In this document: piece after piece, positions 43,601 through 64,000 of the stretch
How positions within the stretch are numbered: the stretch's first letter is position 1
Layout of the letters: each line of letters opens with the position of its first letter
Source: Caecitellus pseudoparvulus
Taxonomy: Eukaryota > Protista > Bigyra: Bicosoecida
NCBI GenBank assembly: GCA_965644315.1
Contig: CBFFRQ010000081.1
Location: 186,001 to 250,000 of the forward strand
Direction: 5' to 3'
DNA length: 64,000 bases
Notes under the pieces: model-generated
Told to the model about the DNA's origin: nothing
What the model saw: the letters and a program-made list of their open reading frames with translations, nothing else
Databases searched by the model: none
Position numbers and translations under genes: made by a program

Positions 43601-43996
43601 CCGGGCGCACCACCACGCCAAGCGGGACTGGGAAGTCATTCAGGATCATCTGCTGCGGTTCAAACGGAAGGTATAGTCCACATTGAGCAGTTGGGCTTCA
43701 GTGAGCTGGCCAAGAGAAACCCAAGGGCAGCCGCCGAGGTATGTGCCGTTTGCCATGAAGCTGTTTGGGGCCTCTTCATTCAGTGCCACTACTGCGGCAC
43801 GGGGGGCCACGCAACATGTCTGAAGCGCTGGTTCGAGCACAACACTCACAGCCCGGGGGGCGGGCACGCCTGCGTGCGAGGTGGCGGCCTACGCACGCTG
43901 CAGCTCGAGCCAAAGCCCAGGCCATCGACTCCGGCGGCAGGTTCCTCACGAGTCGAGCACACCTTTCATGGCTTCGAATGCCTGCTTGATGACTGA
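40605..43996 (+). CDS. WDR24: GATOR2/SEACAT subunit WDR24 (Sea2)-like WD40 protein with C-terminal RING-like zinc finger
   Basis: Intron 40702-40772 joins GAVSISADNELLWVAGRH to ILQVFRILPDTFEE...DVKCHP...LAATAAASGAVVLW. WD40 repeats, CLHNAGVA...LW, GELQTC, YIDLLHRHRLW, and CAVCHEAVWGLFIQCHYCGTGGH. Confidence 0.85.
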
Positions 43997-44705
43997 AATC
44001 CCATTAATGCGCTTTCTCCTCTTGAACTTGGGCATACGTCCGTGCGGCGGGGGAGTGGGCTGATGGTGCCAGGCGGTGCAGTGGGGCCGGCGCCGGTTGC
44101 CAAACTTCCACACAATGAAGGAAATGAACACGTGTTTAGTTGCATGATCCATGCTGGGTATGGTCCTTGGGTTTCTTGGGACGCTCACTCGGGTGGCCTG
44201 CATCAGTCGCAGCGCGATGCACAAGCAGTGGAAAGCGAAGAGCACAAGCGCAGACAGCTTCTTCGAGCAATTCATGTGATACACACGAGAGATTGGACTG
44301 TACCTGCTTAGGCTACTCATTGAAAGGTGGATATTCGCCCAGTTTCAGTGTGGCTTCGCTGCGCTGGGTGGACGGTCACAGGCACAGTGCAGCCCAGCTT
44401 CGTCTCGACTTCGAAGCTGTTTCGCCAGCTGAGGGGGCGAGCCGCCTGCGCCGTGCACAGCTACGATCCGGGCAGGCGCATCGAGGCTTCTACGTGCCAT
44501 GAAAAAAGGAACATCCTTATCCCATGCGATCAAGCTTGCCGTGTTGTTGGCCGTTGCATCAGAGGTACGGAAACCTTGCGAGGCGCGGCTTCTCCGGCTC
44601 GCTGACAGCTGAGCTGCGAACAGGCACGATCGCGGCTTGCTGGCCTCCTCTGACGAGCCAAAGGGAAGCAGTGCTCCAGCATGTGGTGCCATAGAGCCTG
44701 CATTC

Positions 44706-47700
44706 ATGTGGTATTGGCTGCCATGCGTGGTTCTGCAAACTTGTGTCGTTTGGCAAGCATTGCTGGCCAGCTCGCGGGCAGTGCACGCTTCCACTTGCTC
44801 CTCGAGCCGCAGACTGGTCCAGCGTCAGCAAGCAGCCCGCCAGCGGGATGGACCACTCACGCAAGCATGAAGTACAAGCTTCTTTCCCAGGGCATAACAT
44901 CCTGGTACAATGCGTCGGCTGCTTGTGCTGCAGAGGCGCCAGGCGCCACCCTGGCCGTCATCCCTGACAGCTCCACCGCCTCGGCTGTCTCCAGCCTCGT
45001 CGTCAGCAAGGCGTGGGTGGGCCTGACAGACATCCGCACTGGTACGTGCATGCAGAGGCCATGTAGTGTTCTGTGCCAGGCCTGGTTGGAGTCTGGGCTG
45101 GCTGTGCTGCCGCTCAACTGCACTGTGCTCTGTGCTTCGTGCCTGTCGCAGAGGACCGCCCCATGTGGGTTGACGGGACGAGCCCCTCTGGGCGAGGGTA
45201 CAGCAACTACGAGAGCGTGACGCCTGCCCTAGACACAGGCGCCTTCTGGGAGCGCACATCAGGGGAGTTCGAGGGGGACTGCTTCTACATGGACCCCACT
45301 GATTCGGACAGGTGGCACTACGCTCGTGAGTGACGACTGGGGCCGCTTCAGTGCTCCTGCCCCCAGCGATGCTGAAGCGACTTGGCTCACTCCCTGCACT
45401 GCACACTGCTTCACAGGCTGTGGAGATGCCTCTGCTGCATCGGCTGCTTTGTGCCAGGTGACGGTGACGGTGTGGGAGGTGCCAGGCTCGCCTGCCTTGC
45501 CCAAGCCCATCTGGAGCGCGGGAGGTGGCGCAGCAGACTGGTCCGCCGCACAGGCGGCCTGTGCGAGCGAGGGAGGGACACTGTGGACGCCCCACACGTC
45601 TGCGGAGGTGGCATGGGTGCGCACTGCCATGGGCTCAGGCGATCTGTGGACTGGGGCGTGGCGGGTGTCGGGCGACGGTGCGAGCTGGCGCGCTGACAGC
45701 GGCGCAGCACCCTTTGGGCGCAGTCTGTCACCGCCTGCATCGCCGTGGCACTGCCAGCGGTGCATGGGGCTGGTGGATGGGGGCGGGCTGGAGCCCATGC
45801 CTTGTGCTGCGTCCGCCGTGCCTGTGTGTGAGTCTCTGCGGGCGGGGACGGGGGATGTGCACGGCAAGTGTGCCCCTGGCTGGGTGTGGCTGCAGGACCA
45901 GCACATGTGTGCACGGTACGTGGCCAGTGGTGTGGCGTCCATGCAGCGCGCACTGCAGGCGTGCCACAGCGTGGAGGGCATGCTGCCGCCTGCTGACGAG
46001 GCCGGTGCGAGTGGGCTGTTCGGTGCGCTGCTGCGGCTTGGCGTGCTGCCTGCACACGACAGCGGGGCGCCAAAGGCGGTGTGGACGGCGGCAGCTCGAT
46101 TGGGCGGGGATGCAGGCTTTGTTTCATGGCACACTGGTGCCAGTGTGGCCACTGGGAGTCTGACGTTCGATGGCGCCGGGGATGTCGGTGCAGCGTACCT
46201 GCAAGTGTCCGCAGTGGATGGCAGCAGTGTGGAGGCGAGCAATGTGGGGGATGTGCCGGCGGGGGTGGTGTGTTTGCGGCCAGAGTACGAGGGGGAGGGC
46301 GGCATGCTTGCCTGTGCGCAGGGGTGGTGGCCGGTGCTGGGCCAGTGCTGGGCGCTGTCCAGTGACGTGCAGGCTGAGGCGCTGGAGGAGTGGGGGGCAA
46401 CCTTCGCACAGCCGCGGCGAGCCGACTTCTCTGGCTCTCTGGCCGACGCCCGGAAGGTGTGCCAGGCCTGGGGCGGCACAGACCTGGCCAACTTGAACTC
46501 GCCCTATGCAGCCCTGGCCCACCATGCCCTGACCACGGGCCGAGCCGAAGCTTTTGACTCAAGCAGTGCTGTGAATACGACGGCATGGTGGCTGGGTGTG
46601 GAGGATGACGGGGCCCAGTTTGTGTGGTCCAGCAACGGCTCAGCGTTGTCGGACGCACACCACCCAGCGCACTGCCCAGGCAGTTCATGTGGCTACAGCA
46701 GCAGTGGCGGGCTGGCAGCAGTGGCTGACGAGTGGCCTGTGTGGGTGCCGCTGCATGAAGACAGCCCTGCGTCCTTTGTGTGCAGCGTGGAGCCAGGCAA
46801 GGCGTGTGATGGCGTGTGGGCGTTCTGGAGGCAGGGCTGCATTGCCGCGACAGCCTCCGCTGCGAGCTGGAGCGACACGCTGGACGTATGTCTGGCCAAC
46901 GGCGCGACGCTGGCGACACCCACGACCCACGCCATGACTGTGGGGCTGTTGGACTTACTGCCAGCCAGCACAGAGTACTGGGTGGGTGTGGGGGAGGCGA
47001 GTGGGCCTCGCAGTGGTGTGGAGCTGCATGCAGGGCGGCACAGTGTGGAGGGCGTGCCGTTTGCATCTGGACACGTGGGAGATGTGCCTGTGCCAACATC
47101 CGGCCGACAGGGTGTGTTCGACACAGGAAGTGGGGATGTGACGTTGGCTGCCGGGGGCAATCGGAAGGGGCTGTGTTGGAGGCCAGCGGGGGTGGACTGG
47201 GCGGAGCTGCGGCCTGGCCAAGGAATGCTGGAGTACAGCTGTGAAAATGTCAATGACTACAACGTTTCAGGAACTTGTTTCGAGCATGTTGATCTGCTCA
47301 TGCATGTGGGGCCTGCTACACGCAAGTGTTTTGACCTCGGTGGAGCTCTTGCAACGATGAACACAGAAAGCTCATTTCGTGCGTTTGTGAACTTTGTTGT
47401 GTCTGAAGGAGGAATTGGTGCATTTTCACAAGATGACGCCTTGCTTGGACTCGTTCCGAGTGGTCGGGCCACCTCTGATGACCCTCTGACGTACACCTGG
47501 CTGTCTGGTGCAGCACCGTGGGTAGACAAATTCGACACGAACCAGCCAAGGAAAAACAAGGATACTACAGTCGCAGAAATCGGATCTGACCCGGCGAAAA
47601 TCGGACTGTGGGATGTGGAGGAGATCGGCGACAGGAACGGCGTTCTGTGCTCTGCTCCGGTCGTTGACCCATGCCCGGTCGGTTGGACACTCATTTCAAG

Positions 47701-50700
47701 CTGGCAAGGCCATGCAAGCGTTTTGCAAGCCCGGTGTTACAGGGCAGGACTGACACCGACAAACCATGCTTCTGCTTCAGCGACATGCTCGAGCTCAGAC
47801 TGGGGTGGGCACCTGTCCGCGACGTTGTGGAGTCCTCGATCTCTGGCGGAAGTGAGGCTTGTGTTGAACTGGGGTTGGGAACAAGCTGGGAGCACAAACA
47901 CTGACTGGTTCACGTCGCTGACGTTCAACAAGACTGAGGGTTCCGTGCACTACTATCAGCGAGCTGATGGCAGCTTGACAAGGACGGGCTCAAGTGATGC
48001 TGCACATGCTTTCAACACATTTGCGTCTGGTGAGCCAAACTATCCAGGCCTTTCGAGTGGGGAGTGTGTCCGGATGAGTGAGTATGAGCTGAAAGACATA
48101 AGCTGTGCGAATTCCTTCCACTTCTTGTGTGAGATGCCGGTACCAGGTCTGCGATCTGCCACGGACTGGTGGAGTACGCGGCTTGTCGAGCCCCGTGTAG
48201 ACACAGCAGGCATTGTGCCTGGCCCACCAAGTGAAAGCTGTGTTGCGTCGACCAGTCCAACTCCAACTGCAACAGCATCCAGCACGCCCAGCGGCACCGT
48301 GACCAGCACGCCCAGCAGCACCGTGACCAGCACGCCCAGTGGCACCGTGACCAGCATGCCCAGCGGCACTGTGACCAGCACGCCCAGCGGCACCGTGACC
48401 AGCACGCCCAGCGGCACCGTGACCAGCACGCCCAGCGGCACTGTGACCAGCACGCCCAGCGGCACTGTGACCAGCACGCCCAGCGGCACCGTGACCAGCA
48501 CGCCCAGCGGCACCGTGACCAGCACGCCCAGCGGCACCGTGACCAGCACGCCCAGCGGCACCGTGACCAGCACGCCCAGCGGCACCGTGACCAGCACGCC
48601 CAGCGGCACCGTGACCAGCACGCCCAGCGGCACCGTGACCAGCACGCCCAGCAGCACCGTGACCAGCACGCCCAGCGGCACCGTGACCAGCACGCCCAGC
48701 GGCACCGTGACCAGCACGCCCAGCAGCACCGTGACCAGCACGCCCAGCAGCACACCGAGCGCCTCTCAATCACGCTCGCCTTCGCCATCCAGCACCGCCT
48801 CTGCCCGTCCTTCGACCACCGCACTCCCTTCATCCTCCTCTCCCGCCACTCTCACATGGCTGTCTCCTGCCACACCCACACCTGTTCCTGGACTCCCCCC
48901 TCAAACCACACTCCTCCGCTCCAGGTCCACTTCCCAAGGGACTCAAGCAGGCACTGCCCTCAGCAGTGACACCATTGCCCTCAGCCGGACTGGCACAGCT
49001 GCGCCTGCCGTGACAGTGCAGTCCATCGTGTGCCCAGGCTTGGCCAGCCAGACAGCCTTGTGCTCCGCCCCGATTACGTGGGTCAAGGCAGCTGTGCAGG
49101 CCGCGGCACTTGGTGGAGGTGGCGGCACACAGTACTGGGACGTGTCACTGGTCGTCGATGGCGGCGATGGTGTGCCGTCCCCGCCTCAAGACAGCGCTGT
49201 GACAGTGTACGTGGTGGTCGATGTAGTGGCTGCCGGTGTCAGCATGGGCACTGGGGCTGTGCCGTTGACAGTGCGACCAGGCGGCGTGGCAGCGCCCAGC
49301 GCATCCCCGTTGGTGGTGCCCAGTGCATCGTCCAGCCCGGCGCCGACGCCATCAGGGGCTAGCACGCCTTTGCCGAGTCAGTCAGCAGGTGCGCCGCCAC
49401 GGCCCAGTGCATCCCGCTCGCCAGCCCCGCTGCCATACCTGCGGAGCACAGTGAGCGCTGTGCAGGTAGAGGCACAAGCTGGGCCAGCTGTGGCTCCGGT
49501 GACTCGCAGCATCCCTGTGCAGGCCCCTGCACACGTGACGTGGTCTGTGACGGTGGTCGGTCGTGGGGGTGGCGGGGCATGGGTGGGTCTGGCGGCAGTG
49601 ACTGCGCCGATCGGGTCAGGAGATCGGTCTGTGACGGTGGTGCTGTCCCCAAGCGGGCTGGCAGGTGGCACGTACCGAGGCGTGGTGTCGTTGGTGGCAC
49701 TATCATCCTCTGTGCCTGTGCTACCTGGTCGGCGCAGCGTGTCCGATGTGCCGGGCGTGTCAATCCCCATCACGTTGGTGGTGCAGGCGCCTCGGCTGAG
49801 TGTGGTGCCCGCTTCCTTGCACCAGACCCTGGCGCCGAGTGACGTGTCCACCGTGCAGGTGCTGGTGCGGAACACAGGCACAGCGCCGTTGACATGGTCA
49901 GTGAGTCTGCCTGAGGCACAGGCATGGGTGGGCTTGGTGGGGTCTGCGTCTGGTGTGACAGCGTCTGGCGGCGTGAGGGCCGTGACACTGCGCCTGAATG
50001 CGACGGCAGTGCCGCGCACTGGTCTGTACAGGTCGCAGCTGCACGTGTCCAGCAATGACGGGCGGCGTGGCGGTGCCCCCTTGATCATGCCTGTGGTGAT
50101 GCAGGTGACGGTGTTGGCTGTGTTGCCCAGCGAGGTGGGCATGCGGGTGGCTGGACTGGGGTGGGCGAGGCGGGGCGTGTTGTTGGTGAACCTGCTGCCC
50201 ACAGCTGTGCATGCTGAGTTGGAGCTGAGCAGCACAGGGAATAGTGCGTGGCAGGTGGGTGTGCCAGTGGACGGCGGGCTGGAGTTGGGAGCTCGGGGCG
50301 ACTCGGCCGTGGTGTCTGTGGACGCCCGGTACATGTGCGGTGGGGGCGAAGGTGGGGAGCTGCAGTGGGAGACGTTCACAGACTGGGCGTGTGCAGGAGC
50401 TCAGGGGGCGATGCCGCGGCATCTGCCACTTTGACGGTGCTGGGGCGCAGCGTGGCCGATCCCAGCAACCTGGCCGACGAGCAGAGCGTGCCGGTGAACA
50501 TGTCCTTGACGCCTGGCCCGCCTCTGGCGGCGGCATCCAGCGTCTTGCTGCCGTCACGGACTGGGCAGTCACTGGTCATCGCCGCCGATGCCAGTGTGGA
50601 GCGGCGCACACTGTACCTGGGCGTGTCTGATGCAGTGGGCAGGGGCAGTGTGTTGCGCAGCCTGCCTCTTGTGACATGCTTGAGCCAGCCTTGTCCAGTG

Positions 50701-53208
50701 GCGGTGAGCTTGGGGACAGGCCAAGGCGGCATGCTGTCCCTGGAGCTGCGCCCACTCAGTGTGGGCAGTGCTGCACTGCGGGTGCGCCTGGGTGGGTATG
50801 GCGTGCCGGGGCAGGGTGGGGACAGCGTCGTGTCAGTGGTGGTTGTGCCACCAGCTTGTGATGCAAGTCAGCGCCTGGCGCCAGGTGCCATGCGGTGCGA
50901 GTGTGCTGAGGGCTTCCAGACCCCAGCAGAGGGGACTGCGTCAGAGACTGGCCTGGCGTGCGAGGCGTGTGCACCTGGCACGGTGCGAGCTGGGACTGTG
51001 CTGGATGCTCCAGTGTGCCGGCAGTGTGCTGCAGGGACGTACGCTGGTCCAGATGGCCGAGTGTGCATCGAGTGCCCCGAGGAAGGCGCTGTGTGTGCGG
51101 GGGGGCAGCTGGTGCTGCAGGGTGGAGTATGGTGTGAGGAGTGTCTGCCACAGTCAGGTTTCTCTTCGGCTGCGCCGGCGTTGCTGGGCGGGTACCGGTC
51201 GCTGTACGGGTTGAGAGCGGGGGGTCGGGTGTTGGCTGCTGTGGCGGGATCTGGGCCTGGGCGCCCGACCTTGACGTCAGACAGTGCCATGTTGCCTTGT
51301 TCCCCTGCATCGGTGTGCCGCGCCAATGGCTCTGTGGTGCAGTGTGCGGAAGGGCACCGTGGGGCGATGTGTGGGGAGTGTGAGGCAGGGTGGCGGCGGG
51401 CTGGCCCTGACACGCCCTGCACAGCATGCCCGAGAGACGGCAGCGACGTTGCAGTGACAGTGCTGACGATGGTGATTGCGCTGGGGTTTGTGGTGTATCT
51501 GACGTTGAACCGGTCTGGGCAGGGTGTGAGCACGCCCCCTGCTGCGGTGTTCCGTGTCGTGTCGTCGTGGGCCCAGGTGGCAGCCCTGTTGAGTGCAGCG
51601 GGGCTGTCGCCGGCAAAGCCACTGGACGGGGTGCTGTCAGCGTTGGGTGTGGCGGTGAAGGGCTTTTCGACCTCGAGTCCCGCCGTGCAGTGTGGGCTGC
51701 GGTTGGGTTTCTACGAGGAGCTGTACGTGGCGCTGGCGCTGCCGGTGGTGTGTGTGCTGCTGCCTTGGGCCGGGTTGGCAGCGTCCAAGGTGTGGTCTAG
51801 GAAGGCCATCGGTGCCAGCGCCGCGGTAATGCCAGTTGTGCTTGAAGGTCACCCAGGAAGTGACAACACGCCTGAAATGGGCCCTGCGACAGAGACGCTG
51901 GACATCCCGCAACAGCCTGATGCAGCTGGGCTGGAGCCAAAGATTGCTCCGGCGATGAAAACTCGAGGAGGCATCCAACTCGCCCCTCTTTCAGCATCAC
52001 GCATGCAGGCCACGGCAGGAGCTGCTCTTCTCGTTCAACATGAGCGGTTGCAGGACTTGCCGCAAGCGCCCAGCACTTCGCTCTCTTCACCCTCTTCTCG
52101 TGCAGCTGAGCCATACGAGCACTCGATCCTCTCCACCAACCAAAGCTATTGTGCAAGTCCCGATAGTGCGTCGCGGTCACCCAAGCCTCTCCCAACCTCT
52201 TGGCCGGTTCAGAGAAGCCTGGCTACTGGCAGCATGCTACAGGAAGAGGCTCAGACCTCGACCACTGCTGAATCAGTTGCCACACGCTCATCTCTCATTT
52301 CTCTCTTCTTTGTGCACTTTGGTGTAGTCGAAACATTTTCCAGATTCATGCAAATCCTCCCACATCCTGTCTTCAACCTCTCCCTCTTCCGCCACAGCCT
52401 TGGCCACGGCTCCTTCGACGCCACCTACGGACCAGCTCGAGCCCTCGCAGGCCTTGGTCTGGTGTTCGTGGGGCTCGGCGCCCCCATCGGCGCCATGCTC
52501 TTCCTGCGCCTGAACAGGAGACGCCTGCATGTGCGGGCCTTCCAGCACGCTGCAGGCTTCCTGTACGAAGGGTACCGAGTGCAGGCTCGTGGCGCCTGCT
52601 GTGGTGGGTTCTGGTACTGGGAGCTGTTGATCACGCTGCAGAAGGTGCTGCTGTTGGCTTTGGCAGTGACGGTGCAGGCTCGTTTCGCTCGTGCGGCGGC
52701 AGTGTCAGGTGTGCTGTGCATTGGGCTGGTGCTGCACGTGGCGGCACAGCCATACACGTCGAGCTCGTTGAATGTGCTGTCGGTGGCGTCCCAGTCCAGT
52801 TTGTGGGTGGATTCGATGTTGGGGCTGATGGATTTCGAGCTGCGTGGGGAGTCAGGCCAGGAGCGGGCTGTGTCGGTCGTCAGTGTTGCCAGCACAATGC
52901 TTGCGGTGGGCTTCTTGGGTCTGGCGCTGCTGCTTACCCTGCGACTCGCTTTGGCCGGCGTGCTTTCTGCTGCTGAGCTGGCACACGAGTCCATGAAGAT
53001 CAAGGGGAGTCGCGGGCGCAGTAACTGGAGTCTTCTGCAGGAGGTGTGTCTCCGGGCGACTTGTGCCCAGCGGCTTCACCTCATTCGGGCCGGGTTCGGG
53101 CTTACGAGTCGCGACGGGTTGCACCGTCATGTGCGGCGTCGGTCAAGCGTGGTTGACTTAGCCAGCCCCATGCCTCGAAGAACTGATACCAAAACTCGGA
53201 GCAGTTGA
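44706..53208 (+). CDS. Giant surface receptor-like protein copy 1: signal peptide, 7 C-type lectin-like domains, S/T stalk, Ig-like and Cys-rich modules, multi-pass TRP/FLC-like TM region; 1-nt frameshift near 50399
   Basis: CTLD patterns (W..A..AC...GATLA, WVGL, EPN...ECV...FLCE) recur 7 times. Introns 45042-45151 and 45326-45416, plus a first intron ending 44812. CxxCxxG repeats, CAEGHRGAMCGEC, GFLYEGY...YWELLITLQK and QPY...LN motifs. ORFs 45326-50434 and 50248-53208 are joined by comparison with copy 2. Confidence 0.8.
48281..48753 (+). repeat. 24-bp coding minisatellite agcacgcccagcggcaccgtgacc (STPSGTVT) x19 plus a partial unit
   Basis: Directly visible near-perfect tandem array; 48281-48736 = 19 units. 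Confidence 0.97.
48751..51764 (+). repeat. Inverted-repeat block A, left arm (pairs with 60181-63192)
   Basis: Colinear near-identical DNA and protein (TPSASQSRSPSP...LPVVCVLLP) in both lectin genes; lengths 3014 vs 3012 bp. Confidence 0.95.
52387..52880 (+). repeat. Inverted-repeat block B, left arm (pairs with 58825-59318)
   Basis: FRHSLGHGSFDA...ESGQERAVSV is near-identical in both copies; 494 bp each. Confidence 0.95.
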
Positions 53209-53216
53209 CACTGGGC

Positions 53217-55162
53217 TCATGCTTTGGACTGAGAAGCTCGTCGAGGCCGCTTCGGCCGCGAGGCGACTGGTGCTGCAGCAGCGGCTGCGTGGTCACCTTC
53301 TCTGGCACGTTTTGACCTTTCCTGGGGTGCTGCACTGCCCGCTGGGGCAGCGCTGGAGCTTGCTGCGGCCATGCGAGCAATGATTGCCTGCTCAACAAGG
53401 TCATCCGTGCTTTTTTCAGGCATGAGGTACATGTCAGTGCGCGTGTCCTGCAGGCAATCTGCGACAGCGTCCTTGAGTGCGCTGGACACACCGCTTTTCG
53501 CCGCCGCTGCCGCACCCTCTTCAACGAGGACAAATTTCTTCAAGCTGGCTTGGAGGACAGGAGGCGGCAACAAGCTCATGCCTTTAGCTTTCTGCTCGTC
53601 CTCCTTTAGAGTGCCAGTCAGCAGCTCGCCGATGACATCGTGGATGTCTTGCATGCTCTGTGGCTCGAACGGCAGCGCAGCGCCTTCGTCCTCCTGCGCT
53701 GCTCCTTGCCTGTGCCGGCGCACTGAAGCCGCAACTCTCTTGCGATAGAACAGTAGCATGCTGTCAGGGTTCGCGACGTCATCTGTGAAGTCAGCTCCAA
53801 AGCGCTGGTTTCCAAGCGTCGGGAAGCCTGTGTGCTCCACTCTCATGCGGATGAGAGGCTTCCTCATGGAAGGAGGTGGGCGCATTTCCTCAGGGAGAGC
53901 ATCTAGGTTGCTTTGTGCTTGCTTAAGCAGGTTTGAGCCTTGCGCCATGAGGTACGCGCGCAGCTGAGCGGCCAAGTCCGGCGCGTGTGGGTCCACCTGC
54001 GAGCGAGGAGCTTCAGACAAGGCCAGGTCTGCGATGACCAGCGGCCTCACACACCGCAAAGCCAGGGACTCAGTCTTGAACTGCGTCCCTTGGACAGTCA
54101 ATAAAACTGCATGTTTCGCCAGTGCCTCGCCAGGAGACAGGCTGGTTGCCACTGTGGAGCCTGGTTGGCACACGCGGAAGCCTTTCTGCGAAACGCTGGG
54201 CTCTGGTTCTGGCCTTGAATCGTGCTCGTGCCCCCAGAGCACAAGGTCTATAAACCCTGGCAAGGCTGACTCTGGAATGCAGTTCTTCAGGCCACGCCCG
54301 CGGTTGTTGCGGTTCTGGTGCAGGGTCAGAACGTTGAACCACGTGGCATCCGGGGCAGCTCCTCCACCCGCCGCGGCCGTTGCAACCGGCCTTCGGAACA
54401 GTACCTGCTCCTTATGGAACAGGTGATTCAATGCCACGTCTTGCATAGCGCCGATGCCGTACAGGGCCACCCTTGTGCTACCTTTGCGCAGGAGCACAGG
54501 GTACAAGTCAACAGGCGGGGACAGCGCATCCACCTTGCCAAAATAGTTCACGAGGCCCGACAGTGCCAGCAGATCCAGCGCTGCAATGCCCGTCGTCATT
54601 TGGTCCCGGCCAGGTTCGTCGTGGTTGCCGTGGATGGAAAAGACTGGCAAGGCAATGTTCAGGTGTGGGTCCTCCCAATTCGGGCGCCGGAACCCACTGC
54701 CGCCAGCGCACAGAGTGCGACTGTGATCAGACAGTACCTGCATCGCCACAGGCTCATCGCCGAGGCAGTATGTGCGGAGCAGTTGCATGGTTCTGCAGCA
54801 TGCGCGGTCGAGGTGAGGGGCGTCGCGCTCTGAGCATTGCCGGTGCCACGCACTGTGCCAGCGTCTCCTGGCTTGGCCTCTGGTCATGGAACAGATCGCC
54901 ACACAGCAGCAGCATGTCAACTTGGCGATCTCTGGCAAGGCGCAGAACCTCCTCGAAGGCGATGAAGCTGTCCATCCTGCGCTCCTCGTCGCGCTCTTTG
55001 TACCCAAGGTGCACGTCTGTTGCAACCAAAATCCGCAACTCGTTGCTGCGCAAGGCGTTTGAGCAGCGGCTCTGCACGACGGGCTGCACGTCTCGATATG
55101 CGCTCGCCTCACTCTAACTCTTCATGGTCCGTGCTGCCCTCGGGGTGTTCAGGAGCGGCCAT
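53217..55162 (-). CDS. MRE11: Double-strand break repair nuclease MRE11 (3 exons, ~603 aa)
   Basis: RILVATDVHLGY, GDLFHD, PVFSIHGNHD, LHQNR, WGHEHD, QPGSTVATSLSPGE, RFGADF...VANP. Introns 55046-55118 and 54793-54853. Confidence 0.95.
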
Positions 55163-55566
55163 AGTCCAAGAACGGCGACAGACACAGCCTGCCGAGCAGA
55201 GCCGATTTGTGGCCTCCTCAGAGCAACTCTGGCAAATAATAGCACGTTTACCACGAGCTGGCGCAATGCTAAAGCACGGAAACCATTTTTCTGGTTATTG
55301 AATTATTTGTATGCGTCGTAAGATTTGGAGCCAGCTCTGATTGGGTTGCGTTGTCCATTGAAAGCTTGTGAAGTGCGCATCCAGACGGTCACTTGCAGAC
55401 TGAGGCCAGTTCAAGAATCATCCTGCGGGTGTACACAGGACCACAGGCCTTGTGCTGCGTATTCCACTCCTAGGTCGTCCTCTCCATTGCCACTTTCCGT
55501 CCCTCGCAGAGATCAGGGGATTTGCTCTCGTTCGGGTGTTTCAATTTCCGCAGCAAAGCCCGCACC

Positions 55567-56859
55567 ATGAGTTTTTTCGGCTTCGGGGGAGGCTCTAAAG
55601 CGGTAGAGCAGCCTAGTGGGCCACAGGCACCCAAACCAGTGTCAACACTTCATGAACTCGCCCAGACAGGCAGGTACCAGCAGTGGACGAAGCCAGACGG
55701 AGGCACTGTGCACGTGCTCGGTGTTACGCCGTGCTCCTCACTGAGTGCAGCAGAAGTTCGCCTGCTGGCCACCAGCATCAAGCCGGAGGCCGTGTATGTT
55801 GACATGCCCCCCGAGTATGTGAAAGACCTGCAATCTGAGATGTCCAAAACGCCCGACGGCCGCCCGCAGCTGCCAGGGCCCGAGTGGCCTGGCTTCTCCT
55901 TCCGCTGGGATCGGGGCTGGGCTGCAAGCATGACCGAGCACACCCAGCGCCTTCCCCGTGAGCTGGCCGTGCTGGCTGGCCTGGACTACTACGCGCCAGT
56001 TCGGGAGGCACTGCGGTACGTGGGGGCCAACCCCTCCACGCGGCTCATCACATATCCCTTCTCCGTCACACACAAGTATGATGACGCGTACGAGCCGCTG
56101 AGGTCAGTGGTCTCCTTGGAAGTTGACTTGGCCGCGCCGGCGGGGGAGTACTTTGGCACTACGTCCAACACCCTGCGCATCGTGCTGTACCCGAGCATGA
56201 GCAAAACACTCGCCTCCATCAACATCACCTTGCCCCCAGGAGAGTACTTCAACACGGACCAGCTGCGAGCTCTGCGTGCCGAGGCCCAGGCCACTGTGGA
56301 CGCAGCTGCAGCTGGCGTGCGTCCAGAGGAGTGGGACGGAACAACGCAGCTCATTGATGCGCTTCGCGAGATGCATGGACCCGACTTCAACCCAGCCAAC
56401 CCTCCAGACATGGCCTCCACAGTCCTCGTGAATTCTCTTGAGTACCACGTCAAGCAAGCACGCAGCGTCGCATTTGCAGTGCAAAGCGACCCAGGCCAGC
56501 ACGTCATGGCCGTGGTGGATGCTGCACGTGTCGCCTCGTACGGCGCAGAGTGGGAGGCGGCCACAGCGCCGGAGGCACTGTTTCCCGACCGCAAGTTCAC
56601 GACGCTGGCTGTCAAGTGGGGCTTGATCACGACGGTTATGGGGGGCGCAGGTGCACTGTACTGGAGAGCTGCCCGTTCGTGGCCCAAGACTGCTGTTGCT
56701 GCAACTGCACTCGCTGGAGTGTGGGGCGCGGGTGTGTACTGGGAAACCATGAACCAAGTCCCTATGGTGTGTGGCTCTAAGGTGCGACACGCACTTGCCC
56801 GACCAGTACAGCCAATTGGAGCCCACATCAAGCTTGACGGCAATGCCGGTGGCAAGTAA
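55567..56859 (+). CDS. Divergent TraB/PrgY (TRABD)-like protein with two C-terminal hydrophobic helices
   Basis: VHVLGVTPCSSLSAAEVRLLATSIKPEAVYVDM resembles the TraB N-terminal motif; HVMAVVDAARV resembles VVAVVGAGHV; C-terminal TM-like segments. Intronless 430-aa ORF. Confidence 0.55.
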   Translation: MSFFGFGGGSKAVEQPSGPQAPKPVSTLHELAQTGRYQQWTKPDGGTVHVLGVTPCSSLSAAEVRLLATSIKPEAVYVDMPPEYVKDLQSEMSKTPDGRPQLPGPEWPGFSFRWDRGWAASMTEHTQRLPRELAVLAGLDYYAPVREALRYVGANPSTRLITYPFSVTHKYDDAYEPLRSVVSLEVDLAAPAGEYFGTTSNTLRIVLYPSMSKTLASINITLPPGEYFNTDQLRALRAEAQATVDAAAAGVRPEEWDGTTQLIDALREMHGPDFNPANPPDMASTVLVNSLEYHVKQARSVAFAVQSDPGQHVMAVVDAARVASYGAEWEAATAPEALFPDRKFTTLAVKWGLITTVMGGAGALYWRAARSWPKTAVAATALAGVWGAGVYWETMNQVPMVCGSKVRHALARPVQPIGAHIKLDGNAGGK

Positions 56860-56979
56860 ATGCAGCACCAGCACCAGCCGCACTGGGATACCTTTCGAAG
56901 TGGTGCTCGATAGTCTGGCTCAAGGATTGGCCTGTACACCCAGCCGGGAGGAGCTCGTCTGCAGCGCATGAAAGTGCAT

Positions 56980-57960
56980 TTAGAATCCACTTTTCGGCAA
57001 GATGTCCCAGTTCGGCTGCCCGTCGATGCCGACAACCCACTGGGGGTCGCAGTGCTGGCCAGTCAATGAAGCAGCCAAGGCAGCCGCTCGCTCAGCTTCG
57101 ATTTCGGCACCAGTCCAGGGTGGGGGCGTGGCCCCGCTGCAAACGCTCTGTATGGCTGTCCACTCCCCCTCGCCCCCCCCCCCTGCTGTCGCTGCCAAGG
57201 AGGCCAGAGCAGGGTCCAGCTCAAACCCACCTGCCTTGGCCATGCCTTTCCCACCCAGTGCACTGTATGATGTTAAGGACCCAGTTCCAAGGCGCACCCA
57301 AACAGAGGGTCGCATGGGACCCTGTAAACCCACCCCCATGCTAGCGTCCTTGTCGGTGTCAGCCAGAGAAGGGGCCCACAAGCCGTACACTGCCCAGCGA
57401 GCAAGTCCGCATGCTGAGAACGCGATATGTGAGCCAAAGGTCGCCTGGTCCAAGGGGCCGTTTTCAAACCACTCCGCCTGCTGGAATGCCTCTGATGCAT
57501 CTGCTGTCGGCTCAGGCCACTGGGTGACGAGAATCATCAGTGGCGACGCGGGGGGCTGCTCGGCCGCTGCTTCTCGCAGCGAGCCAGTGCAGGCTACGCG
57601 TGCGGCAGCAGGGTGCATGTGCTTGAGAGGCTTTTTGAACGCCTCCATCAACAAAAATGGCGGCAGCGCTTGTGAGATCACGATGGGAAGGTCAGCTGCT
57701 GCCAGGTGTGTCTCCATGTCTCCCGGAACCTCCGCGCCATCGCCACCCATGCCTCCCTTTGCACCACTGGCTGAAGATGAATCTTGTTGCGTCGCATGTC
57801 TGGCTCCTTTTCCGCCAGCCTTTCGTGGCTTTTTCGGTGCTGGGGCAGCTGCACGAGGTTTGGCGGGTGCGGATTTTGTGCCTTGGGCCACTTTCCCTGC
57901 AGTGCGCTTTGATGACCGTGTTCGACGTGCTATGCTCTCAGAACCTTCTTCTGCTGCCAT
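56980..57960 (-). CDS. Hypothetical protein (326 aa) with Lys/Arg-rich N-terminus
   Basis: Long ORF from ATG 57960 following an AT-rich upstream region; no family recognised. Confidence 0.65.
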   Translation of the reverse strand: MAAEEGSESIARRTRSSKRTAGKVAQGTKSAPAKPRAAAPAPKKPRKAGGKGARHATQQDSSSASGAKGGMGGDGAEVPGDMETHLAAADLPIVISQALPPFLLMEAFKKPLKHMHPAAARVACTGSLREAAAEQPPASPLMILVTQWPEPTADASEAFQQAEWFENGPLDQATFGSHIAFSACGLARWAVYGLWAPSLADTDKDASMGVGLQGPMRPSVWVRLGTGSLTSYSALGGKGMAKAGGFELDPALASLAATAGGGGEGEWTAIQSVCSGATPPPWTGAEIEAERAAALAASLTGQHCDPQWVVGIDGQPNWDILPKSGF

Positions 57961-58355
57961 TTTATTCGAGTAAAGTTGCACTTTACACCCTCGAACCTTT
58001 TTAGTGTGCCTTGCTTGTGGTATTTACAGGACCGAAGGGAACGGTGCGGAAAACGGTTTCTCACCACCACCACGCCAATCTGTGCACGGGCGGTGGAGGC
58101 GAAGGAGCTCAAACTGCTGGAAGAATCAATGCAGTTTTGTGAAGTACACCCATAAATTAATGCTGAATTCAAGTTCATCGTTTGATTCATTCTAAATTGA
58201 CGATTTGGCCGGGCTTCCTTGGTTTGACTGGCGTGCTTCCCATCGAGCTCGGACAAGCAGAGACATGCTGAATTACAATGAATTATAAAATGCGATGACA
58301 TCCTAAGCATGACTAGCGGCTAACAAGCACGGCTAGCTCGCATCACGCACCTGCG

Positions 58356-61300
58356 TCAACGTGAGTGGTCTGCAGGGCGGAGCAGGTGCGCGCCGCCCAT
58401 GCTCTGGGACTGTTCCAAGCCATCAGACTGAGTGGGGTTCGGAGATGAAGGCGAGGGAGGGGACTGATACGACGCACTGCGCTGCGTCAACGAGCGATCG
58501 GAGCCCCCAACTGGGGTGTAGTGAAGTTTCTCACCGCCAAGTGCAGATGCGCTTGCAGGAATATTCATGCGAAGCGTGCGACTCAGCTTGCTCTGGCTTG
58601 TCACCCCAAGTGCAGCCCGAACAAGCATGACTCGCTGCCAGCACGTGGCCACAGCCCAAACGCGCTGCAAACTTTCACAGCGCCCTTCTCTTGCCCTCGG
58701 AGAGAGGCCTAGCGCCCCGTGAGCAATCGCCACAGCGTGCCAAAGCCCGCCGAAAAAGATGCTCACCCCCAAAGCAAGCGCAAGACACAAGAAGCCCACC
58801 ACGATCACCGTACTGGTGGCTTCCACGACTGACACAGCCCGCTCCTGGCCTGACTCCCCACGCAGCTCGAAATCCATCAACCCCAACATCGAATCCACCC
58901 ACAGACTGGACTGGGACGCCACCGACAGCACATTCAGCGAGCTCGACGTGTACGGCTGTGCCGCCACGTGCAGCACCAGCCCGATGCCCAACACACCTGA
59001 CACTGCCGCCGCACGAGCGAAACGAGCCTGCACCGTCACTGCCAAAGCCAACAGCAGCACCTTCTGCAGCGTGATCAACAGCTCCCAGTACCAGAACCCA
59101 CCACAGCAGGCGCCACGAGCCTGCACTCGGTACCCTTCGTACAGGAAGCCTGCAGCGTGCTGGAAGGCCCGCACATGCAGGCGCCGCCTGTTCAGGCGCA
59201 GGAAGAGCATAGCGCCGATGGGGGCGCCGAGCCCCACGAACACCAGACCAATGCCTGCGAGGGCTCGAGCAGGTCCGAAGGTGGCGTCGAAGGAGCCGTG
59301 GCCAAGGCTGTGGCGGAACACGGTGAACCCAAATATGGGTTCGGGAAAAGTGTCAAGGAACTTGATGAAGGACTCCACAACGCCAAAGTGGACGAAGAAC
59401 AGAGCAATGAGAGCTGTCCGGGTTGCATAAGCGGACAGCGGCAGAGCAACAGCTGGTGAGAATGTCGCTGCCTTGGACATCCAGCTGCGGGTTGGCCTGC
59501 CACGGGGCCCAATGTCCGTCCAAGTGCTGGACGTGTCACGGGCAGAGTGACGGTCACCTGTTCTGCTCGTGTCAATGGGCGGGGGGAGGAAATCCGATGC
59601 AGTGCGCGATCCACTGCAAACTGAAGAATCGTCAGACTCGTGTGCTCGCTCCGATATGTGTGACTGCAGCGCTTCTCCAGAGAAGTCGAGCGCCTCGGGA
59701 AAGGAAGGTGCTGCCCGACCTGAGGCAGGGGAGAGGTCGTAGTCCATGCTGAACTGCGCCAAGTCAAGCGAGGCTTCGACGCCTTGGGGCTCGCGACCAG
59801 GCAACTGCAGACTGTCAGCGGGAGTTGCGTGCTCTCCGTATGCCGGAGGAGCAGCAGCGGTGCCAAGGCTTGCTTCCGGCTGCACACTTCCTTGCGCTTT
59901 TAAGGGCGGGAGAGTCACACCGTTTCTCCGGTGCTGCTGAATGTCAGACAGTACAACTGCAACTGCTGGCGCTTCGTGTGGAGCGGGAGGTTGAACCTTC
60001 AGAGAGCGAACTTGAAGAGGCAGCTCTTGGCTTTCCCCAGATTCGTCAGATGGCAACCGCCCTGGCAAAATGCGTGCAGACGTTCGAAGCCGCCTGACGG
60101 ACGGCATTCGCGCCGCGACTGTCGCAGGACAGCATGTTCCAGCCACACCAGACGCCCGAACGGCCCACAGCAACGCGAAAGGTAGCAGCACACACACCAC
60201 CGGCAGCGCCAGAGCCACGTACAGCTCCTCGTAGAAACCCAACCGCAGCCCACACTGCACGGCGGGACTCGAGGTCGAAAAGCCCTTCACCGCCACACCC
60301 AACGCTGACAGCACCCCGTCCAACGGCTTTGCAGGCGACAGCCCCGCTGCACTCAACAGGGCTGCCACCTGGGCCCACGACGACACGACACGGAACACCG
60401 CAGCAGGGGGCGTACTCACACCCTGCCCAGACCGGTTCAATGTCAGATACACCACGAAACCCAGCGCAATCACCATCGTCAGCACTGTCACTGCAACGTC
60501 GCTGCCGTCTCTCGGGCATGCTGTGCAGGGCGTGTCAGGGCCAGCCCGCCGCCACCCTGCCTCACACTCCCCACACATCGCCCCACGGTGCCCTTCCGCA
60601 CACTGCACCACAGAGCCATTGGCACGGCACACCGATGCAGGGGAACAAGGCAACATGGCACTGTCTGACGTCAAGGTCGGGCGCCCAGGCCCAGATCCCG
60701 CCACAGCAGCCAACACCCGACCCCCCGCTCTCAACCCGTACAGCGACCGGTACCCGCCCAGCAACGCCGGCGCAGCCGAAGAGAAACCTGACTGTGGCAG
60801 ACACTCCTCACACCACACTCCACCCTGCAGCACCAGCTGCCCCCCCGCACACACAGCGCCTTCCTCCGGGCACTCGATGCACACTCGGCCATCTGGACCA
60901 GCGTACGTCCCTGCAGCACACTGCCGGCACACTGGAGCATCCAGCACAGTCCCAGCCCGCACTGTGCCAGGTGCACAGGCTTCGCACGCCAGGCCAGTCT
61001 CTGACGCAGTCCCCTCTGCTGGGGTCTGGAAGCCCTCAGCACACTCGCACTGCATGGCACCTGGCGCCAGGCGCTGACTTGCATCACAAGCTGGTGGCAC
61101 AACCACCACTGACACGACGCTGTCCCCACCCTGCCCTGGTACGCCATACCCGCCCAGGCGCACCCGCAGTGCAGCACTGCCTACACTGAGCGGACGCAGC
61201 TCCAGGGACAGCGTGCCGCCTTGGCCTGTCCCCAGGCTCACCGCCACTGGACAAGGCTGGCTCAAGCATGCCACAAGAGGCAGGCTGCGCAACATGCTGC

Positions 61301-64000
61301 CCCTGCCCACTGCATCAGACACGTCCAGGTACAGTGTGCGCCGCTCCACACTGGCATCGGCGGCGATGACCAGCGACTGCCCGGTTCGTGACGGCAGCAA
61401 GACGTTGGATGCCGCCGCCAGAGGCGGGCCAGGCGCCAAGGACATGTTCACGGGCACGCTCTGCTCGTCGGCCAGGCTGCTGGGATCGGCCACGCTGCGC
61501 CCCAGCACCGTCAAACTGGCGGATGTCGCAGCATCGGCCCCCGAACCCCCTGCACACGCCCAGTCTGCGAACGTCTCCCACTGCAGCTCCCCACCTTCGC
61601 CGCCGCACATGTACCGGGCGTCCACAGACACCACTGCCGAGTCGCCCCTTGCTCCCAACTCCAGCCCGCCGTCCACCGGCACACCCACCTGCCACGCACT
61701 ATTCCCTGTGCTGCTCAGCTCCAACTCAGCACGCACAGCTGTGGGCAGCAGGTTCACCAACAACACGCCCCGCCTCGCCCACCCCAGCCCAGCCACGCGC
61801 ATGTCCACCTCGCTGGGCAACACAGCCAACACCGTCACCTGCATCACCACAGGCACGATCAAGGGGGCACCGCCACGCCGCCCGTCATTGCTGGACACGT
61901 GCAGCTGCGACCTGTACAGACCAGTGCGCGGCACTGCCGTCGCATTCAGGCGCAGTGTCACAGCCCTCACGCCGCCAGACGCTGTCACACCAGACGCAGA
62001 CCCCACCAAGCCCACCCATGCCTGTGCATCGGGCAGACTCACTGACCATGTCAACGGCGCTGTGCCGGTGTTCCGCACCAGCACCTGCACAGTGGACACG
62101 TCAGTCGGCGCCAAGGTCTGGTGCAAGGAAGCGGGCACCACACTCAGCCGAGGCGCCTGCACCACCAACGTGATGGGGATTGACACGCCCGGCACATCGG
62201 ACACGCTGCGGCGACCAGGCAGCGCAGGCACAGAGGATGATAGCGCCACCAACGACACCACGCCTCGGTACGTGCCACCTGCCAGCCCGCCTGGGGACAG
62301 CACAACAGTCACGGACCGATCTCCTGAGCCGATCGGCGCAGTCACTGCCGCCAGACCCACCCATGCCCCGCCACCCCCACGACCGACCACCGTCACAGAC
62401 CACGTCACGTGTGCAGGGGCCTGCACAGGGATGCTGCGAGTCACAGGAGCCACGGCTGGCCCAGCTTGTGCCTCCACCTGCACAGCGCTCACTGTGCTGC
62501 GCAGGTATGGCAGCGGGGCTGGCGAACGGGATGCACTGGGCCGTGGCGGCGCACCTGCTGACTGACTTGGCAAAGGCGTGCTGGCCCCTGATGGCGTTGG
62601 CGCCGGGCTGGACGATGCACTGGGCACCACCAACGGGGATGTGCTGGGCGCTGCCACGCCGCCTGGTCGCACTGTCAACGGCACAGCCCCAGTGCCCATG
62701 TTGACACCGGCAGCCACCACATCGACCACCACGTACACTGTCACAGCGCTGCCTTGAGGTGGGGACGGCACACCATCGCCGCCATCGACGACCAGTGACA
62801 CGTCCCAGTACTGTGTGCCGCCACCTCCACCAAGTGCCGCGGCCTGCACAGCTGCCTTGACCCACGTGATCGGGGCGGAGCACAAGGCTGCTTGGCTGGC
62901 CAAGCCTGGGCACATGATGGACTGCACTGTCACGGTAGGTGCAGCTGTGCCAGCCCGGCTGAGGGCAATGGTGTCACTGCTGAGAATAGTGCCCGCACTT
63001 GCTCCTTGGGATGTGGACCTGGAGCGGAGGAATGTGGTTTGAGGGGGCAGTCCAGGGACAGGTGTGGGTGTGGCAGGAGACAGCCATGTGAGGGTGGGGG
63101 GAGAGGAGGATGAAGGTGAGGGGGTGGTCGAAGGAGGGGCAGAAGCAGTGCTGGATGGTGAAGGCGAGCGTGATTGAGAGGCACTCGGTGTGCCCGAGAT
63201 CGAACTGGTGGCACTGCCAGTCACCGTGGTGCTCGTGCTGGGTGTGGCGCTCACTGCTGCACTGCTGGTGGCTGTGCCTGAGGCCCCGCTTGTTGGAGTC
63301 CCACTGCTTGTGGAACTTTGCGAAGGTGAGCGCGAAGCCGACGGGGAGTGCGAGGAGGTGGTGGAAGGCGATCTCGAGCTTGTTATGGATGAAGAGGGGG
63401 TCGCGGATGAGGTCGCCGTCATGGAGGAAGTGGCCGACACGGATGCAGTTTGAGATGGCGTGCCCGTGCTCGTCATGGAAGGCGTACTGGTCGCTGAAGG
63501 CGATGGCGTGGACGTGGGTGAACTTGTTTGGGAAGAAGTGCTTGTTGCGGAGGAAGTAGGCGTGAACGTCGGCGTTTCACTCGACGAAGGAGTGGGAGTC
63601 ACAGACGAGGAGGCAGTTGCTGACGTGCTTGGCGAAGAGCCTGATGACAAACTTGCTGTCGGAGAGGCTGTTGAGCTTGCAGTCTGACTTGCTGTTGAAG
63701 TGGGTGTTGGCGACGAAGTTGGGGAAGAAGTCTCACTCGGTGACGGAGTGGACGTGGAAGTTGCCGTGGCCGAGACGGTGCCAGACACAGACGGCGTGGG
63801 CGACGCTGTCGGTGTTGGACTTGGAGATGGTATGCACGTGTCCACTCCTGCCGACAAAACGGGCTTGAACAAGTCCACTCGTGGCTCGATGAACTGCCCC
63901 CTTCTGAACGAGTCATCACTGCGCAGGCCAGGCACGGCCATCTCACAAATGTAGCGATGCAGGCTCGCACATGAAGTATCCTCCAAAAGACCATCCTTCA
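58356..64000 (-). CDS. Giant C-type lectin multi-pass receptor-like protein copy 2 (partial, 5' end beyond window; frame intact)
   Basis: Uninterrupted >1876-aa ORF: CTLD end (DTSCASLHRYICEM), S/T/P stalk, and the same Ig/Cys-rich/TM modules as copy 1. Confidence 0.9.
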   Translation of the reverse strand, partial: KDGLLEDTSCASLHRYICEMAVPGLRSDDSFRRGQFIEPRVDLFKPVLSAGVDTCIPSPSPTPTASPTPSVSGTVSATATSTSTPSPSETSSPTSSPTPTSTASQTASSTASPTASLSSGSSPSTSATASSSVTPTPSSSETPTFTPTSSATSTSSQTSSPTSTPSPSATSTPSMTSTGTPSQTASVSATSSMTATSSATPSSSITSSRSPSTTSSHSPSASRSPSQSSTSSGTPTSGASGTATSSAAVSATPSTSTTVTGSATSSISGTPSASQSRSPSPSSTASAPPSTTPSPSSSSPPTLTWLSPATPTPVPGLPPQTTFLRSRSTSQGASAGTILSSDTIALSRAGTAAPTVTVQSIMCPGLASQAALCSAPITWVKAAVQAAALGGGGGTQYWDVSLVVDGGDGVPSPPQGSAVTVYVVVDVVAAGVNMGTGAVPLTVRPGGVAAPSTSPLVVPSASSSPAPTPSGASTPLPSQSAGAPPRPSASRSPAPLPYLRSTVSAVQVEAQAGPAVAPVTRSIPVQAPAHVTWSVTVVGRGGGGAWVGLAAVTAPIGSGDRSVTVVLSPGGLAGGTYRGVVSLVALSSSVPALPGRRSVSDVPGVSIPITLVVQAPRLSVVPASLHQTLAPTDVSTVQVLVRNTGTAPLTWSVSLPDAQAWVGLVGSASGVTASGGVRAVTLRLNATAVPRTGLYRSQLHVSSNDGRRGGAPLIVPVVMQVTVLAVLPSEVDMRVAGLGWARRGVLLVNLLPTAVRAELELSSTGNSAWQVGVPVDGGLELGARGDSAVVSVDARYMCGGEGGELQWETFADWACAGGSGADAATSASLTVLGRSVADPSSLADEQSVPVNMSLAPGPPLAAASNVLLPSRTGQSLVIAADASVERRTLYLDVSDAVGRGSMLRSLPLVACLSQPCPVAVSLGTGQGGTLSLELRPLSVGSAALRVRLGGYGVPGQGGDSVVSVVVVPPACDASQRLAPGAMQCECAEGFQTPAEGTASETGLACEACAPGTVRAGTVLDAPVCRQCAAGTYAGPDGRVCIECPEEGAVCAGGQLVLQGGVWCEECLPQSGFSSAAPALLGGYRSLYGLRAGGRVLAAVAGSGPGRPTLTSDSAMLPCSPASVCRANGSVVQCAEGHRGAMCGECEAGWRRAGPDTPCTACPRDGSDVAVTVLTMVIALGFVVYLTLNRSGQGVSTPPAAVFRVVSSWAQVAALLSAAGLSPAKPLDGVLSALGVAVKGFSTSSPAVQCGLRLGFYEELYVALALPVVCVLLPFALLWAVRASGVAGTCCPATVAARMPSVRRLRTSARILPGRLPSDESGESQELPLQVRSLKVQPPAPHEAPAVAVVLSDIQQHRRNGVTLPPLKAQGSVQPEASLGTAAAPPAYGEHATPADSLQLPGREPQGVEASLDLAQFSMDYDLSPASGRAAPSFPEALDFSGEALQSHISERAHESDDSSVCSGSRTASDFLPPPIDTSRTGDRHSARDTSSTWTDIGPRGRPTRSWMSKAATFSPAVALPLSAYATRTALIALFFVHFGVVESFIKFLDTFPEPIFGFTVFRHSLGHGSFDATFGPARALAGIGLVFVGLGAPIGAMLFLRLNRRRLHVRAFQHAAGFLYEGYRVQARGACCGGFWYWELLITLQKVLLLALAVTVQARFARAAAVSGVLGIGLVLHVAAQPYTSSSLNVLSVASQSSLWVDSMLGLMDFELRGESGQERAVSVVEATSTVIVVGFLCLALALGVSIFFGGLWHAVAIAHGALGLSPRAREGRCESLQRVWAVATCWQRVMLVRAALGVTSQSKLSRTLRMNIPASASALGGEKLHYTPVGGSDRSLTQRSASYQSPPSPSSPNPTQSDGLEQSQSMGGAHLLRPADHSR
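58825..59318 (-). repeat. Inverted-repeat block B, right arm
   Basis: Reverse complement matches 52387-52880. Confidence 0.95.
60181..63192 (-). repeat. Inverted-repeat block A, right arm
   Basis: Reverse complement matches 48751-51764. Confidence 0.95.

Follow-up and report, generated by a model that had tools for sequence, protein, structure and literature searches.

The window analysed here, a stretch of 64,000 nucleotides (C81:186001-250000 of a 30.6-Mb, 215-contig assembly), contains two oppositely oriented paralogous genes for large membrane proteins of sugar-binding type with C-type-lectin-like domains (CTLDs), gene A and gene B, with an MRE11 homologue between them; feature positions are window positions unless a contig is given. 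Gene A was delimited from GT/AG sites and by comparison with its paralogs, and comprises a predicted signal exon, seven CTLD-like domains, an S/T stalk, an Ig-like beta region, a Cys-rich (DUF7630-like) region and a multi-pass membrane module. Its start is probably 44499 rather than 44706, as judged from a signal-peptide-like exon predicted there, and analogous hydrophobic exons with a phase-0 donor at their end are found in B and in a third gene, C (C81:32-41 kb). The exons and the two frames of gene A were analysed separately, not as one joined model. The open frame of gene B runs past the window to C81:252836 (2826 codons), its first exons lying near C81:253400. The features of the locus are as follows.

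44499..53208, plus strand: gene A, with three predicted introns and one frameshift in the assembly
44499..44564, plus strand: predicted exon 0, signal-peptide-like, private to A
44565..44812, plus strand: predicted intron 0, phase-0, GT...AG, private to A
44912..47217, plus strand: shared block N, second half of CTLD1 through CTLD5, with two introns inside
45042..45151, plus strand: predicted intron 1, within block N (A, B and C agree at 106-107 of 109 bases)
45326..45416, plus strand: predicted intron 2, within block N (A, B and C agree at 87-88 of 90 bases)
47218..48250, plus strand: private segment 1 of A, CTLD6, CTLD7 and linker (A versus B 21-42% aa identity, dS saturated)
48279..48753, plus strand: A-type stalk, a 24-bp tandem repeat of 19.8 copies with 97% matches
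48750..51766, plus strand: gene A's copy of shared block A (present six times in the assembly, the others 95-96% identical to A)
51767..52386, plus strand: private segment 2, the A-type large loop and next hydrophobic segment, 620 bp, single copy
52387..52880, plus strand: gene A's copy of shared block B, 494 bp, with the C-terminal membrane helices
52881..53208, plus strand: private segment 3, A's last membrane helix and tail
53217..55112, minus strand: MRE11 homologue between the inverted genes, used as single-copy control
58356..64000, minus strand: gene B, 3' two thirds
63194..64000, minus strand: B-type CTLD7 end, linker and irregular S/T stalk, common to copy C and absent from A
60179..63193, minus strand: shared block A in gene B
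59319..60178, minus strand: B-type loop, 860 bp, its first third unlike copies C, D and E and the remainder common to them
58825..59318, minus strand: shared block B in gene B
58356..58824, minus strand: B last helix, common to copies C-F, and B-private tail end

The mosaic formed by the two genes is confirmed and is larger than first described: three shared blocks (N, A and B), 96–97% identical, alternate with four private segments lying between and around them, gene A running from a private 5' end through block N, private CTLD6-7 with linker and stalk, block A, a private loop and block B to a private last helix and tail. Block N, whose partner in gene B lies beyond the window end, is 96.4% identical between A and B and 96.9% between A and C. 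Block A, put at 3.0 kb of near-identity in the preliminary description, is recovered by self-BLAST as an inverted match of 48750-51766 to 63193-60179, with 96.06% identity over 3019 columns and 113 mismatches. A second inverted match (52278-52935 to 59427-58772, 89%) has block B, 52387-52880 against 59318-58825, as its near-identical core, and the near-identity claimed for its 494 bp is matched by 98% aa identity and a pS of 0.09. The loops differ as claimed, at 620 and 860 bp by the present boundaries against 622 and 862 bp before, and the differing tails are saturated in dS; the stalks are likewise unrelated, that of A being the 24-bp repeat and that of B irregular. For the diverged last CTLD and linker, both quoted peptides are present, but the divergent extracellular part is larger and takes in CTLD6, CTLD7, linker and stalk (47218-48749). 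The first CTLD of A (44813-44900) is without both N-terminal hairpin cysteines present in B and C, the half-domain in question being different in each of the three genes.

The CTLD profile PF00059 is matched at 57.6-59.9 bits against a cut-off of 22.6, and seven CTLD-like units can be recognised. In a structure model of CTLD6-7, the confident part, CTLD7, matches CEL-I, langerin and DC-SIGN with E about 1e-6; the CTLD6 part of the same model is of low confidence. Of the EPN/QPD and WND-type motifs typical of Ca2+-dependent sugar-binding C-type lectins, an EPN is present at about 48032 in CTLD7 of A only, with no WND there. The Ig-like beta region has a weak PF22544 match, in an old paralog, G, only, and the Cys-rich region scores below the DUF7630 cut-off. 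The membrane module is multi-helix and split by the large loop, its AlphaFold model having a pLDDT of 33. Atlas groups the C-terminal part with eukaryotic Ephrin_rec_like/DUF7630/PF06011 proteins at 0.95; a PF06011 profile search gave no match for A or B themselves, and weaker paralogs in the genome, found with the A/B membrane region, pass the PF06011 cut-off. Protist proteins of this kind (TRP, fungal Pkd2/Flc-like) share with A and B a Cys-rich region followed by a split multi-helix membrane module, whereas A and B add the seven-CTLD head and a mucin-like stalk and do not match PF06011 directly. Judged from these domains, the protein would most likely be a cell-surface adhesion or sensing protein, its CTLD array carried on the mucin-like stalk, with the Cys-rich region and a TRP/PF06011-like membrane module serving as tether. 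Genome-wide there are at least 56 PF00059 matches, most of them in open frames of 2000-8000 codons, indicating many giant lectin-domain genes.

A count of family members across the genome, as proposed earlier, places block A in six copies in the assembly, these being A, B and C together with D, E and F on contigs C115, C150 and C148. Copies C-F have common downstream DNA near telomere-type arrays, and the contig ends carry a 6-bp tandem array that translates into NP and TL repeats, the pattern expected of a CCCTAA-type telomere. Copies D-F are each cut off within the stalk by a contig break, and the matches listed include no fourth N-terminal half; these three may represent other haplotypes of C or else paralogs that have been collapsed. 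A rough measure, the depth in other samples, suggests a family copy number of about 3-4, the depth of the blocks being 3-5 times single-copy depth. The old paralog G (C69:1422736-1430190) has the same architecture as A and B, with 31-48% aa identity in the block regions. Among the matches listed, the strong CTLD6-7 matches are A, B, C and G only, each in a long open frame, and within the assembly the A/B/C subfamily has three CTLD6-7 types, all of them carried by full genes. Among the copies, the loop's first third occurs in at least three types, and copy F has A-type stalk repeats inside a B-type stalk. Copy F also carries private diverged patches inside the shared blocks, at about 51120-51330 and 52225-52490 in A coordinates (52-87% identity in block A), possibly a relic of another old paralog type. 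The subtelomeric segments on C115, C150, C148 and C81:1-37000 are 91-96% alike over several kb to 18 kb, and three contigs stop exactly in the receptor stalk. Word searches for homologues with A's C-terminal half and with an alignment of CTLD6-7 found nothing within the length window used, no sister-species orthologues were found, and a metagenome scan with the block A end gave no confirmed relative.

The shared blocks appear to be homogenised by interlocus gene conversion, which the sequence comparisons support well through non-uniform dS, homogenised introns, recombination among the six copies, GC enrichment and the recovery of junctions in other samples. Between A and B, dS is 0.125 in block N (where distances to B and C range over 0.08-0.13), 0.06-0.12 in block A and 0.096 in block B, giving 0.06-0.13 for the blocks, whereas it is saturated or about 2+ in CTLD6, CTLD7, linker, stalk, loop and tail; dS is therefore not uniform along the gene, in keeping with the abrupt alternation of near-identical and diverged segments first reported. 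The corresponding pS is 0.057-0.115 in the blocks and 0.69-0.81 outside, so that 88-94% of synonymous sites in the blocks are conserved, as had been noted qualitatively, and among A, B and C the two introns predicted in block N share 97-98% of their bases. Since introns and synonymous sites are homogenised as well, protein-level selection alone cannot explain the shared blocks, a point on which the preliminary description proves right. In per-segment protein trees built with FastTree, the distance of A from B-F is no more than about 0.05 substitutions per site in the blocks and about 1-2.4 in CTLD6-7 and tail, the latter comparable to that of G.

Signs of exchange are also found inside the blocks. 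Across the six copies of block A, 131 informative sites show 24 different splits with 49% incompatible pairs and a PHI-type p=0.0002, although recurrent mutation can also raise site incompatibility, and D and E have a substitution-free common run over 49120-50139. Because D-F may be haplotypes of C, part of this six-copy signal may be allelic, a problem avoided by restricting the test to A, B and C; odd-one-out sites are then clustered in both large blocks (p=0.003 and 0.005). A six-copy GENECONV-like run test was inflated by the private diverged patch of F, and the PHI-type and A/B/C-only tests were relied on instead. The GC content of fourfold sites is 0.70 in the shared blocks versus 0.50 in A's private segments (p=2e-11), with similar values in B and C, while it is flat in G (0.60 vs 0.60) and spans 0.50-0.68 in neighbouring genes; no excess of GC is seen in the introns of the blocks (0.61-0.63 vs 0.61, from a small sample). 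GC enrichment is an expected outcome of GC-biased conversion, and the excess at fourfold sites fits such a process (cf. PMC4180150). With dS, introns, segment trees, the PHI-type test, GC and the bridged loop and tail junctions in agreement, the earlier proposal that conversion homogenises a shared chassis is supported.

The complementary proposal, of diversification in the ligand-binding and cytoplasmic parts, is not supported in the form in which it was put. The homogenised block N takes in CTLD2-5 and most of CTLD1, which are constant, dN in the private segments (0.3-1.2) is below the saturated dS, and between samples the loop differs by about 2% and the tail by 0.6%. Among ten variants listed in the A loop between samples, six are replacement and four silent, which is too few to judge. 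On the sequence comparisons, the private segments are best described as paralog-specific old divergence with no detectable positive selection. CTLD7 has 38% aa identity to G and the blocks 32-34%, so that weak constraint alone does not explain the escape of CTLD7 from homogenisation. Between B and C, moreover, two indel-free islands of 56 and 40 codons occur in CTLD6, with 52% and 45% nucleotide identity and only 28-36% identity at third positions, set in flanks of 93-100% identity. These islands and the constraint on CTLD7 hint at some room for selection. The borders between private and shared parts are sharp and lie inside exons and domains; exon shuffling was rejected as their source, the borders not being at introns. 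No common recombination motif was seen on inspection by eye of six segment borders. In a genome-wide search with CTLD6-7 and block N, the strong matches listed were A, B, C and G only, with no silent cassette archive among them, and the idea of hypervariable cassettes was rejected on this ground and on the near-fixation of the private parts between samples.

Window DNA also occurs in marine metagenomes. Three other samples, X3, X5 and X7, represented by short unphased contigs, each depart from the window at single-copy sites and would seem to come from other strains. X5 and X7, from two studies, each contain one 685-bp contig that covers 51732-52416 and spans both loop junctions, and contigs of X3, X5 and X7 pass from block B through A's tail into MRE11, so that at 51766, 52387 and 52880 individual contigs from other samples run across the junction. 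A collapse artefact, a concern that had been raised over the identical blocks, is therefore rejected for the loop and tail junctions. The paralogous blocks are about 4% different as against 1.1-1.2% between samples over the single-copy spacer; 13-14 of the 685 bases of the A loop contig differ between samples, and the A tail has two differences in about 330 bp to another sample. The 1-nt frameshift of gene A near 50395-50399 in the assembly is not seen in three other samples, where X5 and X3 contigs and an X7 loose end have one extra G, and is therefore an assembly error or private to the strain; the X3 contig is also without a base at 50404, in a run with many 1-base deletions, one of them inside MRE11. 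A metatranscriptome run contains pieces on blocks A and B, one of which exits into B-type flank, which suggests that the family is expressed, the pieces not being specific to A.

Genes A and B are quite probably an ancient pair of paralogs in partial concerted evolution. The segments between the blocks and the two ends of the gene are as diverged as the old non-exchanging paralog G. The locus is a clear example of a known process and not a new diversity-generating system. Homology-dependent ectopic repair, that is, interlocus gene conversion, would keep rewriting the blocks, with the 8-kb inverted arrangement and the extra subtelomeric copies helping conversion, and segments that had once drifted beyond a pairing threshold would have dropped out and would now diverge independently. 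Conversion is known to end once substitutions or large indels disrupt pairing (PMC3924837). In gene A, all four private segments include or adjoin either an end of the gene or a stretch prone to indels (the 5' end, the stalk repeat, the loop and the tail), a pattern suggesting that the loss of pairing was nucleated at these places and spread from them; the indel-free islands of CTLD6 between B and C are unexplained by this idea. The outcome would be a few fixed receptor isoforms rather than a hypervariable repertoire.

Several other readings account for part of these data. The same conversion could be at work with the private segments held apart by selection, CTLD6-7 setting ligand specificity and loop and tail setting signalling in the manner of paired receptors or of opsin-type divergence peaks, a possibility that deserves serious but subordinate weight and that is compatible with partial concerted evolution for some segments. 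The CTLD6 islands would fit it, as would the sharp borders within exons and domains, the persistence of A-type loop and tail in several samples, and the motif position in CTLD7, which reads EPN in A, APE in B and APT in C; a peak of divergence amid conversion is moreover a recognised sign of selection (PMC3924837). However, dN is below dS everywhere, the saturated third positions of the islands show age and not adaptive change, and A's private segments are long (0.3-1.5 kb) and adjoin indel-prone stretches. It is improbable that A is a one-time chimera of a recent B-like duplicate and an old paralog, formed without continuing conversion: the similar dS of about 0.1 in all three blocks would follow from such an event, yet six crossovers would be needed, A is private at both ends and in its upstream DNA, and the patchwork inside the blocks and the GC excess point to repeated, long-running exchange.

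An active diversity-generating system, whether by shuffling of cassettes or by inversion of the MRE11 spacer swapping receptor halves to give many variants, is a very remote prospect. The inverted orientation and 3 kb of 96% identity would permit inversion, and the mixed stalk of copy F could be read in the same way, but there are no spare cassettes, the strong CTLD6-7 matches listed all lying in the long frames of A, B, C and G, no boundary motif in common was seen by eye, other samples have the same A loop and the same tail-MRE11 linkage with no inversion joints listed, and allelic divergence is low. Least credible of all is an artefact of assembly collapse or polishing, an explanation largely refuted for the loop and tail junctions; three of the six copies do end at contig breaks in the stalk, and A's frameshift looks like an error, but the 113 differing sites in 3 kb amount to about four times the between-sample spacer difference of 1.1-1.2%, and the junctions concerned are bridged in other studies.

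Partial concerted evolution of A and B can be set beside several known systems. In trypanosome VSG, Borrelia vls and chicken Ig, programmed conversion diversifies a variable part from a silent archive; these systems resemble A and B in the alternation of constant and variable segments and the involvement of conversion, whereas in A and B conversion homogenises the constant part, an archive was not found and the private parts are nearly fixed. Several paired leukocyte receptors have C-type-lectin-like domains. In the merohomogenization of paired leukocyte receptors (KLRC/NKG2, KLRI, KLRB, Ly49, PIR; PMC3210942), paralogs have homogenised ligand-binding parts and different signalling parts, much as A and B share CTLD2-5 and differ in loop and tail; in A and B, however, homogenisation extends to the membrane module and leaves out two CTLDs, so that it is not restricted mainly to ligand-binding domains, and their multi-pass architecture with seven CTLDs is unrelated. 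Closest in kind is partial concerted evolution with divergence peaks (Fawcett and Innan 2011, PMC3924837; Tigriopus GOT1 paralogs, PMC3728101), in which low-divergence tracts including introns alternate with high-divergence islands and chimeric haplotypes occur. The islands of A and B differ from those systems in being long, fully saturated and sharply bounded within single exons, and in belonging to a small family of giant membrane proteins from a protist.

As a natural case of partial concerted evolution in a little-studied protist lineage the locus is sharp, with G as an internal non-exchanging control and a GC signature that tracks tract borders within single exons. A broader proposal, to be regarded as doubtful, is that in a free-living marine protist a limited number of surface receptors are maintained on a chassis homogenised by conversion, selection protecting the stalk-proximal CTLD6-7 (including the B/C islands) and the cytoplasmic segments. 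If true, this would be a unicellular analogue of paired immune receptors, and the islands would map specificity-determining surfaces for the recognition of prey, virus or partner; if the CTLD6 islands in particular are kept by selection, they indicate which residues determine the ligand specificity of a surface receptor in a protist. Few molecular data exist on how free-living protists recognise their prey, as has been said for phagocytosis genes (PMC7852580).

The surroundings of the pair offer some further observations. The MRE11 gene, whose best named matches are in oomycetes and other stramenopiles at about 40% identity, making a marine stramenopile the likely source of the DNA, encodes a double-strand-break repair protein and sits within the inverted pair, which may be coincidence; its nearest relative, at 48% identity, has different neighbours, so that this search for a synteny outgroup returned none. 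Upstream of gene A, 40793-43996 encodes a protein with WD40 repeats and a C-terminal RING-like domain, WDR24/SEA2-like by its domain layout. The minus strand at 7067-24862 holds a 5931-codon open frame with a weak Laminin_G_3 match in the part scanned, and coding tandem repeats lie at 5147-6127 and 1-365 (42/87-bp and 102-bp periods, respectively). Elsewhere in the assembly, long CTLD or membrane-module genes form further pairs that are clustered or in opposite orientation, at C32:706673(+)/752111(-), C40:294766(-)/306724(+) and C68:554954-567987.
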